A stretch of DNA of 64,000 nucleotides from contig NC_043001.1 in NCBI RefSeq assembly GCF_006345805.1, positions 98,394,001 through 98,458,000 on the forward strand, in the 5' to 3' direction. The DNA comes from Octopus sinensis. Its lineage: Eukaryota. The position numbers and the translations under genes were made by a program. This document shows, piece after piece, positions 28,841-62,207 of this stretch; positions within the stretch are counted from its first letter, which is position 1; the number at the start of each line of letters is the position of its first letter. Below the pieces are notes generated by a model, which did no database searches, had not been told where the DNA came from, and saw only the letters and a program-made list of their open reading frames with translations.

Positions 28841-29108
28841 ATGGCTCTAGTATTCGCTGTAAGATCTACAAAATATTTTCGAATTGCCATTACTGTATCT
28901 AAACTATATCATCGTCATATTTCTTGTTTAAACACGCTTTATCATAGTCCTCATCGATCGTCTGCTGATATATATTATTTACCATGTCGTTGGAAGAATA
29001 CCGGCCAAAACAAGGATTTAAGTTCTTTATTCCATCCTCTGAGAGCTTCTCCGGTGAATAAAGATAGTGACAATATCGGGGCCGAACTCAGTGGAACACT
29101 TAATAAAG
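28841..29108 (+). CDS. SUPV3L1: SUV3 exon 1 (mitochondrial targeting peptide; ...DLSSLFHPLRASPVNKDSDNIGAELSGTLNK)
   Basis: ATG at 28841; basic/hydroxylated N-terminus; SLF.PL...D.IGAEL motif as in SUV3; phase-1 end at AAG|gcaagt (GC donor). Confidence 0.88.
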
Positions 29109-30829
29109 GCAAGTATGTGACCTTCGTGTATAAATGTAATAATATTCGGTAATTAGCAAAATACACGGTACCCGGTTTAACATGACAACCTGGTATCTTG
29201 GATAATTTCAGCTGAGTTTACTTTTTTGCAGGCTTTCGGATTAAATTTCCTTGTTCCACCCTCACCTACATTTTGTCTGCACTCTTTCAGGTTTGGTTTT
29301 GGCCCCTTTAAGCTTATATATCTAGGGAAGCTTGTAAAGGTCATGTTCACGAACTTATAAACAAAGAAAAAATTTTTATATTTGAGAACAAACGGCCCGA
29401 CCTCACAGTAAATCTCATATCTAGTTTTAATCTTGTTTCCATTGAATATATTTTGTATTATTTTCAGCATCGAAAAAATTGTATATATACGTGTTATTTC
29501 TATTTCATATTACTCATATTCATTGTGTACAAGTTACATGTCGAGGAAATAAAATCTGGCAAATATTATAGTCTACTCGGTCATAAATTATTTCAGCCGA
29601 TAGCTTGGGGTCCCCCTGTTTTAAGTTTATTTCAGAACTTGGTTTCAAAATGTTGGCGGTGTTGGGTCAGCCCTTACGTCTACAAGGCTGAGGGGACAAC
29701 ACCGCAAATGTGGTTTCTGGTGCTGCTGTCAAAATAAATTATTAGCTATGTCCCGTATATTTAATAATCATTTGTACAGAGTGATAAGAAGAAAAGACAT
29801 CATACATGTATGCATGATATATAGTCAGTGAGAAGTAAACTATGTTGTCATTTTGTCACGTAAAGGATATCTTATTATTGTACTACTAGCGAACAGTGGT
29901 CCCGGTGCACGCACTCGCGCATCCGCGCTAGCTAGTCGTAAGTAGTCGATCCTACAACGACTTGCGCGTATGTTTGTATTTCAAGGCTGAATACAAGATC
30001 GCCTATTAGTTTTATAAACAAACTAAGGTTAGGGTTAGGTTTAGGGTTAAAAAGTCGTTGTAGGATCGACTAACTAGCGCGAGTGCACGCACCGGGACCA
30101 CTGTTCGCTAGTAGTACCTCCTATTATTTAGTTTTAAGTATTAATAAAATCCATGTATTTACGTATATGTCACCAGTCGGAGATGAGGAAGTAATTTTCG
30201 GCAAGGTAGCAACTTATCCTTACATCTTCTTATATCGAGAAGAGCGATTATCTCATATTGAATGTGAAGGTTGATGTTTGCGGTTTATATACTGCGACCT
30301 ATATTTTTCAGGGTCGAAAGAACTCGTGTATCGTGTCTTTGAAATACGATTTCCGGTGTACCGGTGGAATTTGATGAATATGGTTCTGTGATTTGGGTTG
30401 AGTCTTCGTTGAAATCATGTTATTCGATATTAAAGTTCTTGTTTCCCTGTTTTCGTAGAGGTCATATCTAAGTATTAAGATATTTCGTAGAAGTCATATC
30501 TAAGTATTAAGATATTACGGAACGTTGATAGGTAGTGGTCACCCATACTAAAAGTCAATATGAAAATTAAGCTTATTGATTTCTTTTAATGAAGTGTTAT
30601 ATCGGGGAAAGTTAGGCGAGTTTCGTTTAGCGTTAGAACGGGTCTCCTCGAGAAGATCGATGAACAAGGCGTTTGGACATGGCAGTCAGGTTTTTTTTTT
30701 TTTTTTTTATCATACACTGTAGGATAACATACATACACACAAAGATCACACACACACATATCTGTGTGATCTTTGTGTGTGTATGTGTTATCCTACAGTG
30801 ATTCTCTGGATCATCTCTGATGAAACCAA

Positions 30830-31468
30830 TACTCATCCTAGGTTAAGAAATGTTCAAGAAAACCAGCTGGATCTGTCTGAAACAGTGTCACATTTTCCTG
30901 TGATGTGATCAGCCTGGTGTGCTTTTGAAGACATGGCACCCACCAAGCAGAAACCTTCCTCATGCCAAGTTCATTGTGCAGAATATTATCACTTCTTTCA
31001 TGGGGTATGCTCTTTCATGACTATTTGATTTTATAATCAATTGTCTGTCATCTATCCCCATGTGGTGAACATGATCGAGGTTTCCCTTGGTGGTGACAGT
31101 TGCAGGATGTCCAGACATTCGGTCATCTTCAAGACTTACCCTTCTCCTAAATTCAGCTGCTCACTTTTGCACTGTTGAGAAAACTGGAGCATCATTCCCT
31201 AACATTGCAAAAATGTTAGCATGATTGTTATTGAGGGGCTAAACCCTTTTCTGCAGGTATTTCATAACAGCATGATGCCAAATTTTATCCATTTTCAAGA
31301 GGTGTCACTACTAGTTACTAATTACATTTGAAGTCGTCTTTGAACAGTCTACCTAGAAAGAAACCCTGCAGTTATTAATAAGAAGGGTTGAAATTAATGC
31401 ATACAAGATTTCACGGCTCTAGCATCACTCCTTCTTAGTCAGCCTATGAACTTTCCTGACAACCCTCG
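30830..31468 (-). mobile_element. Degenerate mariner remnant
   Basis: TIR-like cacgagggttgtcaggaaagttc and broken N-terminal transposase reading. Confidence 0.55.
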
Positions 31469-60930: not shown

Positions 60931-61730
60931 AAATTTGATTTAAAATGTTAATTGAATTTTTCCCTGTAAGTTTTGGTATTATATTCCCTACTATTATTAT
61001 TATATATACATACATACTACTTACATATATACATGCACCACCACACACACACACACACACACACACACACACACACACAATATATATATATATATATAGA
61101 TATATATTATATATATATATATATACATACATAAATATCTGTAAATATAAAAACCATATGAATTTATCATTTTTTCTAATATAAGATACCTGTACATCAG
61201 CTCCAAACCTTCTAATATATGTATATGTATGTACATACATAATATTATATATATATATATATATATATGTATGGATACACACACACACATAATATATATA
61301 ATATATATATATATATATATATATATATATACACATACATATATATATTAATATGTATGTATACATATATATATATATATGTATATATACATATATATAT
61401 ATATGTATGTATATATACATATATGTTATATATGTATGTTGTATATATGCATATATATATATGTATGTATATAACATATATATATATAATGTATGTATGT
61501 ATGTATATATACATATATATATATATGTATGTATGTATATATGCATTTATACATACATATATATAATATATATATATATATATATATATATAATATATAT
61601 ACACACACATATATATATATATCTATATCTATATATATATCTATATCTATATATATACCATGTTGATATTTTGTATTTTGGATATCTATTATATATCTTT
61701 GTTATGTTTGGTTTATTTTTCATTTTGCAG

Positions 61731-62207
61731 TTACCGCTTCCCAGATATGTTTCCAGATGTCGAACAAGTGCGCTACATGCAACACGAACTCGACTCTATC
61801 ATTTAAGTCGGTGTATTTAACATCACCAGTTTGCTCAAGTCCAGCAAGCAACACACAACTGGAGTCAATGTTATTGACGACGATGAAGACTTTGATATAC
61901 GCAGTTGGCTGAAAAGATCTTTGAAGACTTCTCTCGCTGAAACGAACGAGGGAGATTTGGATGATTTCTCTCCAGAATTGTTGGAGGATTATGGTGAATA
62001 CAATAAAAGTATCACTAGTAATAAGAAAACGCTCACAGACTCTTATGTAAATGCCAAAAACCTCCAGAGTGTTGGGAGGTTAGAGCCAGGCCAAGGTAAA
62101 CTCACTGCATATCTATTGAAGAAAGTTTGTTGACGCCAAAAGTGCTTCGTAAGCTTCAAGAAGAATGGTCGTTAGAAGATGACTATCGTAAAAAGAAGAA
62201 AAAATAA
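61731..62207 (+). pseudogene. SUPV3L1: SUV3 terminal exon with TAA at 61804-61806 and a 1-nt deletion near 62125
   Basis: ttttgcag acceptor; [36 protein letters not shown]...; after the shift the frame reads (G)LLTPKVLRKLQEEW...KKKK*, like human GLLTPDMLKQLEKEW; AATAAA at about 62247. Confidence 0.9.

Follow-up and report, generated by a model that had tools for sequence, protein, structure and literature searches.

A SUPV3L1 locus of Octopus sinensis in which the 5' half of the functional gene is followed by an old unprocessed pseudogene, probably through a false join

Background

The question addressed here is how one gene copy can have clean first exons and splice sites while its remainder is broken by stop codons, a frameshift and the loss of six exons. 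It is raised by a stretch of 64,000 nucleotides of the Octopus sinensis reference (RefSeq assembly GCF_006345805.1, contig NC_043001.1, positions 98,394,001 to 98,458,000; referred to as the window, with positions counted from its first letter), which consists of AT-rich, repeat-laden animal DNA and which carries, from 28841 to 62207, an intron-containing copy of SUPV3L1, the gene of the mitochondrial helicase SUV3. An initial annotation, made from the letters alone, had taken this copy for a single gene with four independent lesions and clean exons 1 to 5, 12 and 13. The comparisons described below lead to another answer: on the sequences compared, the 5' half is the functional O. sinensis gene's own sequence and the locus is a mosaic rather than one decaying copy. 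We regard the presence of a pseudogene and the mosaic structure, taken alone, as almost certain, while the complete account, in which an ordinary old pseudogene and the functional 5' half were brought together by an assembly error, is the one that we favour with moderate confidence.

Exons of the locus and intact SUPV3L1 genes elsewhere

Exons were located by tblastn using database proteins of O. sinensis (P0121), Argonauta hians (P0122) and O. vulgaris (P0241) as probes; the conclusions are built on these three, a human SUPV3L1 sequence having served as first probe only. Point lesions were called by base-level alignment against the functional genes. Nine exons, corresponding to exons 1 to 5 and 12 to 15, were found on the plus strand, and the layout initially proposed, with exons 6 to 11 missing and two nonsense changes plus one frameshift in what remains, was confirmed by both approaches. 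Exon 1 (28841-29108) contains the start codon and encodes a presequence-like N-terminus in which the first acidic residue does not occur before position 43. Exons 2 (33768-33845), 3 (37048-37155) and 4 (38142-38256) encode Suv3_N, and the side identical to the functional gene ends, as far as exons are concerned, with exon 5 (39882-40050), which contains the Walker A motif GPTNSGKT. The other side comprises exons 12 (47102-47182), 13 (49988-50167), 14 (52706-52854) and 15 (61731-62207), the original stop codon being located at 62205-62207. When read from the DNA, exon boundaries show AG acceptors and GT donors with the exception of the exon 1 donor: intron 1 is a GC-AG pair (exon end AAAG, intron start GCAAGT; window 28841-29114). 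As the functional gene has the same pair in O. sinensis as well as in O. vulgaris, this pair is not a lesion, and the splice sites, described as clean at the outset, are indeed all present, one of them in a form other than GT.

Parent residues 247-503, which correspond to exons 6 to 11, gave no match on either strand of the window in tblastn with the O. vulgaris and A. hians proteins, and no displaced or inverted remnant of these exons was found in the window.

A protein search with a long query retrieved XP_036359041.1 of O. sinensis (P0121; 788 aa), with 100% identity to the window in exons 1 to 5; its cluster mate is CAI9723460.1 of O. vulgaris (P0241; 800 aa). The functional O. sinensis locus (CM016863.1:123,009,386-123,061,242; hereafter L001) has exons 1 to 13 and 15 intact while exon 14 falls in a 100-N gap (L001 40501-40600), and the functional O. 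vulgaris locus (L002; OX597818.1:121,620,366-121,673,563, plus strand) has all 15 exons. In both loci exon 5 is followed directly by exon 6, with an intron of ca. 1.7 to 2.7 kb that contains no gap. The O. vulgaris protein displays all five Pfam domains (Suv3_N, DEXQc_Suv3, Helicase_C, Suv3_C_1 and SUV3_C) and matches the structures of human SUPV3L1 (3RC3, 9VC8) with an E-value of ca. 1e-275. An intact paralogue elsewhere, which the initial annotation had postulated, thus exists in O. sinensis with 14 of its 15 exons intact and the remaining one in the gap.

The RefSeq protein XP_036359041.1 lacks exon 14 and has ca. 36 residues in its place (VITGLWPHWSTASKGFESKKLH...VYLSFC), which come from a repeat and from the intron upstream of exon 15 (L001 40230-40322; window 51377-51469). 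With exon 14 in the gap and repeat-derived residues substituted for it, this protein counts 788 aa and not 800 as in O. vulgaris.

A near-identical 5' half and a diverged 3' half

Comparison of L001 with the window by megablast yielded a single 22.5-kb block at 99.4% identity, the remaining gene being only 88-96% identical. Over window positions 18826-40259 (plus strand; L001 1-21419), which include at least 10 kb of upstream sequence, exons 1 to 5 and the start of intron 5 and whose left limit is that of the reference DNA compared, 5 substitutions (4 of them transversions) and a few short indels were counted in 21.4 kb. The first difference of the paralogue type lies at 40260, about 200 nt into intron 5; past this position there are 74 substitutions in 1.1 kb, with differences occurring every ca. 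14 nt. The switch takes place in a junction zone (40100-40260, plus strand) composed of the tail of a short interspersed element (SINE) and of an (ATG)n microsatellite at 40225-40243, where identity falls from ca. 100% to ca. 92%. Expressed as divergence from the parent, this corresponds to a step from ca. 0.02% over the 5' 21 kb to 7-10% over the 3' 24 kb, and the step is made within ca. 50 nt.

In three-way alignments of 5' control regions the window differs from the functional O. sinensis gene by at most one position, as against 165 and 168 sites unique to O. vulgaris, and at all of the 333 sites peculiar to O. vulgaris the window has the O. sinensis state. Exons 1 to 5 owe their clean state to being sequence of the functional gene itself, and this state is hence uninformative on selection. 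The description of the locus as a decaying, intron-containing SUV3 copy accordingly stands for the 3' part and fails for exons 1 to 5, and a single copy with four independent lesions gives way to a mosaic.

On the other side of the junction, blocks remain colinear with the parent from intron 5 through the 3' flank at 88-96% identity. Intron 5 of the pseudogene (40260-42529, plus strand) is colinear with L001 21420-23589 at ca. 92% identity, and the 3' flank (62208-64000, plus strand) is colinear both with the functional 3' flank (88-91%) and with that of an O. vulgaris pseudogene described below (92-95%).

An old pseudogene and its O. vulgaris orthologue

Six colinear blocks were compared in the 3' half. 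Divergence of the window from both functional genes amounts to 3-8% in five of these and to 12-14% in the sixth, whereas between the functional genes themselves it is only 1-3% in the same five and 8% in the sixth. Sites unique to one sequence in three-way alignments are likewise concentrated in the window (66 vs 19 and 19; 47 vs 15 and 10; 66 vs 3 and 7).

A search with the tail of exon 15 led to an O. vulgaris "hypothetical predicted protein" (P0244) and, through it, to an O. vulgaris pseudogene (L003; OX597818.1:104,976,649-105,007,756, minus strand), which is located on the same chromosome as the functional gene, 16.6 Mb away and in the opposite orientation. Its identity to the window is 97-99% over 47669-55392 and 92-95% over 60925-64000, and both nonsense codons, the TGA of exon 14 and the TAA of exon 15, recur in it. 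Both C-to-T nonsense changes reported initially are thus shared with the orthologue of another species and are real, not consensus errors. In a four-taxon comparison of site patterns, all 102 sites place the window and the O. vulgaris pseudogene together and apart from the functional genes, none supporting another grouping. When a Logan contig from another octopod was used as outgroup, 26 differences were assigned to the pseudogene branch and 33 to the functional branch, a balanced split indicating that divergence was roughly clock-like and that the copy is simply old; two other candidate explanations, in which the 3' half would be a fast-evolving copy or come from a third species as an orthologue, are rejected on this polarisation.

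The 3' half is thus a real pseudogene that is older than the species split, and the proposal of a young pseudogene does not hold against the shared lesions and the 102 sites. O. sinensis and O. vulgaris separated 2.5 million years ago (PMC10700109); scaled from this published date, the duplication would have occurred roughly 4 to 14 million years ago. Colinear introns and flanks, an intact parent, real lesions and the loss of purifying selection were all found, as is expected for an unprocessed duplicated pseudogene. The copy resembles known unprocessed pseudogenes of segmental duplications in having kept its introns and flanks next to nonsense changes, a frameshift, deletions and a transposable element insertion while the parent is intact, and also in having a sister-species orthologue that shares its oldest lesions and in the relaxed constraint that followed the split. 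It differs from them in being preceded by a near-perfect 5' half of its parent, an unusual situation that is probably an artefact.

Several observations were made on the O. vulgaris pseudogene and on candidate relatives. The protein P0244 (112 aa; L003 10001-21108, ca. 104.99 Mb) has as its first exon the pseudogene exon 15, starting from the Met of FDMRSRL, which is spliced to downstream exons; as the O. vulgaris annotation pipeline made use of transcript evidence, the pseudogene region may be transcribed in that species. An annotated O. vulgaris gene of 93 residues ends inside or beside the pseudogene exon 6 (L003 1-43). The best short match, P0001, considered as a possible diverged 5' half of the pseudogene, was discarded because the introns of its contig measure a few hundred bases, which points to an unrelated organism. 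A search with the 57-aa Walker A exon returned exon-sized open reading frames (ORFs) from many animals, with no octopus-specific one among the matches listed.

The C-terminal tail of the window copy (62179-62192) reads EDDYRKKKKK and that of the O. vulgaris pseudogene EADYRKKKKK. Comparison with P0242 of O. bimaculoides, for which a locus look-up gave no record, and with P0122 and P0243 indicated that the pseudogene tail is closer to that of O. bimaculoides (EADYQKKKKK) than to that of the functional O. sinensis and O. vulgaris genes (EANHHRKKKK). The five nucleotide differences of the tail are packed into 12-14 nt and point to a clustered change that the functional lineage underwent once the duplication had taken place.

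Lesions and decay history

In exon 14, a TGA codon (52712-52714) occurs in place of CGA (Arg), in a CpG context and 140 nt upstream of the last exon junction. Exon 15 has a TAA (61804-61806) in place of CAA (Gln) and, further downstream, has lost one G of AAAGGTTTG at 62125/62126, after which the frame runs into a TGA at 62131-62133. The SUV3_C region of the window copy lies behind two stop codons. Exons 6 to 11 are all gone, as initially stated, yet their absence does not correspond to one lesion but to two deletions: one of ca. 560 bp that included exon 6 (loss site at 42529-42717, plus strand) and one of 10.7 kb that removed exons 7 to 11, with a junction at 43195-43577, near 43355 (plus strand), that joins L001 24399 to 35089. 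The O. vulgaris pseudogene has kept exon 6, in which it displays its own CGA to TGA change. Exon 12 of the window has three synonymous differences from the functional gene and is missing from the O. vulgaris pseudogene, while exon 13, with an Asp to Ala change and one synonymous difference from the functional gene, is 100% identical to its O. vulgaris counterpart.

These changes can be placed relative to the species split. Those common to the pseudogenes of both species, and thus older than the split, are the two nonsense codons, the Asp to Ala change of exon 13 and several synonymous changes. The window lineage alone shows the loss of ca. 560 bp with exon 6, the single-G deletion, three replacements (Met to Ile, Arg to Trp and Ala to Asp) and a 5.5-kb insertion of repeats and long interspersed element (LINE) sequence. 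Changes restricted to the O. vulgaris pseudogene comprise the exon 6 nonsense codon, a deletion that took exon 12, and Leu to His, Arg to Cys and Leu to Phe replacements. The deletion of exons 7 to 11 is assigned to none of these groups, its junction falling within the stretch deleted in O. vulgaris. After the split, pseudogene exons accumulated 6 nonsynonymous and 1 synonymous changes plus 1 frameshift, compared with 2 nonsynonymous and 10 synonymous changes in the functional exons (Fisher p = 0.006, with small counts). This relaxed constraint looks like that of a neutrally evolving unprocessed pseudogene.

Three of the disabling or missense changes are C to T transitions at CpG, namely CGA to TGA twice and CGG to TGG once (window 52712 and 61906; exon 6 of the O. 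vulgaris pseudogene at ca. position 66), a pattern consistent with methylation-driven decay.

Reading frame and domains of the conceptual product

The end of exon 5 and the start of exon 12 are both in phase 0, and splicing of exons 1 to 5, 12 and 13, plus two codons, results in an ORF of exactly 335 aa. Splicing and Pfam analyses bear out its initial description as a product with the N-terminal domain and Walker A but with no Walker B. In this conceptual product Suv3_N (PF18114) is complete (positions 1-116 of 116, E = 9e-42), DEXQc_Suv3 (PF22527) is matched at positions 1-62 of 154 only, with Walker A present and the DExQ box absent, Suv3_C_1 is matched, and Helicase_C (RecA2; PF00271) gave no Pfam match. 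A motif scan of the window detected GPTNSGKT at a single site (39928) and, in any frame, none of the other helicase-core motifs, including DE[IVAC][QH]. The locus is thus comparable to SUV3/SUPV3L1 in that exons 1 to 5 encode the full Suv3_N and the Walker A part, and exons 12 to 15 the C-terminal domains; it is unlike it in lacking positions 63-154 of DEXQc_Suv3, with the DExQ box, and all of Helicase_C. Of the features that define a functional SUV3, Suv3_N is found in the window copy while a full DEXQ RecA1 domain, Helicase_C and an open C-terminal frame are not. As predicted from these data the window copy cannot be a helicase, and a protein made from the hybrid would have neither the DExQ box nor any part of the RecA2 domain.

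The existence of the 335-aa ORF depends on the junction at ca. 40250 being real, which is doubtful. By the usual rule, a stop codon located more than 50-55 nt upstream of the last exon junction exposes a transcript to nonsense-mediated decay (NMD); were the junction real, the exon 14 TGA, 140 nt upstream of the last junction, would make the transcript an NMD target. Nothing was seen that would support a role as regulatory decoy, which had also been put forward, and no function is expected of the pseudogene fragment, which lacks the helicase core.

Origin of the junction

The junction probably arose when the O. sinensis genome was assembled, as a false join or false duplication. The sequence of events would be as follows. 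[quoted passage not shown] This copy gained the CGA to TGA change of exon 14 and the CAA to TAA change of exon 15 before the split, and has since decayed separately in each species. During long-read assembly, reads or a contig end from the true gene may have been joined to the pseudogene through the 92%-identical intron 5, at the SINE and microsatellite, leaving the 5' half of SUPV3L1 twice in the assembly; the 335-aa ORF would then correspond to no real product.

Several findings argue for such a join. The 5' copies differ by ca. 0.02%, mostly by transversions and indels, and four transversions among five differences look like consensus noise. Noisy long reads poorly separate intron sequences that are 92% identical. 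A 100-N gap is present at window 12608-12707, and the contig that bears the junction starts right after it, 27.5 kb upstream of the junction, while the intact gene is contiguous over intron 5 in the assemblies of both species. Heterozygosity of O. vulgaris is 1.22%, and the O. sinensis assembly has been reported as composed of 20,491 contigs with 5.2% duplicated BUSCOs vs 0.5% for O. vulgaris (PMC10700109). The 5' copies are far closer than the ca. 1% that separates haplotypes and consequently look like the same DNA assembled twice. At the level of the assembled sequence the locus in this respect resembles false duplications and chimeric joins of noisy long-read assemblies, with a block of at least 21 kb present twice at ca. 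99.98%, differences of an error-like type, a paralogue switch at a repeat, a contig start at a gap 27.5 kb from the junction and a level of duplicated BUSCOs reported as ten-fold that of the sister species' assembly.

Some points weigh on the other side. The join is deduced from assembled sequence; the window and L001 may come from different assemblies; and real recombination and template switching also favour microsatellites or SINE tails. Exact look-ups of pseudogene ORFs (the exon 15 tail, a junction-spanning ORF and exon 13) in independent read assemblies returned no record, which leaves the O. vulgaris assembly as the only independent support for the pseudogene. Finally, only the part from intron 5 onwards can be shown to be an old copy, and this copy may have diverged exons 1 to 5 of its own.

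The strongest competitor, which we nonetheless consider unlikely, is a real hybrid, in which the functional upstream region and exons 1 to 5 would have come to stand before the old pseudogene through a recent event driven by homology in O. sinensis, such as crossover between inverted paralogues ca. 16 Mb apart (resulting in an inversion), gene conversion over a long tract or break-induced replication. With an intact promoter, splicing from exon 5 to the pseudogene exon 12 and the TGA located 140 nt before the last junction, such a hybrid would undergo NMD or yield a mitochondrially targeted N-terminal fragment of 335 aa. The junction is exactly colinear in the coordinates of both copies and sits at a SINE and microsatellite, exons 5 and 12 share phase 0, and every splice site is present. 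In O. vulgaris the pseudogene lies on the chromosome of the functional gene as its inverted repeat, an arrangement that makes a crossover inversion possible, and a few inversions between the chromosomes of the two species have been reported (PMC10700109). As in chimeric genes that arise by non-allelic homologous recombination, a parental 5' part is followed by a paralogous 3' part with the crossover in a homologous intron and the frame kept; unlike in these, the event would disrupt an essential gene. An inversion would indeed break SUPV3L1, yet the same species shows the intact arrangement in one contig (L001). Alleles would be expected to differ by ca. 1%, whereas only 5 differences, mostly transversions, occur in 21.4 kb; a conversion tract of at least 21 kb, reaching at least 10 kb beyond the 5' end of the gene, would be unusually long; and no protein matching the 335-aa product was found among the database matches listed. 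The stronger statement, that O. sinensis, or one haplotype of the animal sequenced, truly has the junction and that a promoter-bearing hybrid issued from recombination with an inverted pseudogene ca. 16 Mb off expresses the 335-aa fragment or an NMD substrate, appears more doubtful still. If true, the locus might mark a megabase inversion with a breakpoint inside an essential gene, and a real junction would document that paralogue recombination has hit an essential mitochondrial gene.

An internal tandem duplication, with the pseudogene block inserted within intron 5 and the real exons 6 to 15 lying beyond the end of the window, would also make identity drop abruptly at the left boundary of the block. 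We judge it very improbable, because exon 6 comes directly after exon 5 in both functional loci and because the orthologous O. vulgaris pseudogene lies 16.6 Mb away on the opposite strand. Slighter again are the chances of a single, fairly young whole-gene duplicate that decays in place with four lesions and in which exons 1 to 5, 12 and 13 were spared: the lesions and the 335-aa ORF are as this scenario describes them, but a step from ca. 0.02% to 7-10% divergence is impossible from a single duplication and the 3' half predates the species split. That the window represents the only SUV3 locus, altered by consensus or assembly errors or, in a variant, with stop codons rescued by adenosine-to-inosine RNA editing, can practically be dismissed: the lost G, which sits in a GG run and whose deletion is absent from the O. 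vulgaris orthologue, could be such an error, but this TGA and this TAA recur at a separate locus of another species whose genome was assembled independently, the copy is set apart as a distinct paralogue by 102 shared derived sites, and editing would at best convert UGA to UGG and could not restore exons 6 to 11.

Repeats and transposon debris

The insertion that is absent from the O. vulgaris pseudogene spans 55392-60925, with no strand assigned, and comprises a 63-bp tandem array (55570-55767), repeat-rich sequence up to ca. 57.9 kb and LINE fragments. The latter encode pieces of LINE reverse transcriptase (57938-60951, minus strand) as frameshifted ORFs that match RVT_1. Further transposon debris, including a zf-RVT fragment, is found in the window (8047-8460, plus strand; 5463-5735, minus strand), and one debris ORF, which we take to resemble the C-terminus of a mariner transposase, had no Pfam match at E <= 0.001.

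Just upstream of exon 12 lies an (ATG/GGT)n minisatellite (46395-47074, plus strand) with a higher-order unit of 21 bp; the repeat-bearing stretch next to exon 12 measures ca. 925 bp in the window and ca. 380 bp at the functional locus. This minisatellite gives rise to a spurious Asp/Gly-rich ORF of 340 aa and to a strong GC-skew peak. A SINE-like element with the core GGCATCCAGCTGTAGAAA occurs in at least 15 copies on both strands of the window (for instance at 33958-34218, 41138-41398 and 55436-55876), one copy being located at the junction (40100-40225).

Conclusions

What the locus adds is one more pseudogene of the duplicated, unprocessed type, ordinary in its features and derived from a housekeeping gene; it does not represent a new regulator. 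It also calls for caution with the O. sinensis reference annotation, in which the 5' half of SUPV3L1 appears to be present twice, one copy being fused to the pseudogene, while at the true locus exon 14 falls in a gap and the annotation has been patched with a repeat-derived exon. Copy counts, pseudogene calls and probe design in this region would be misled.

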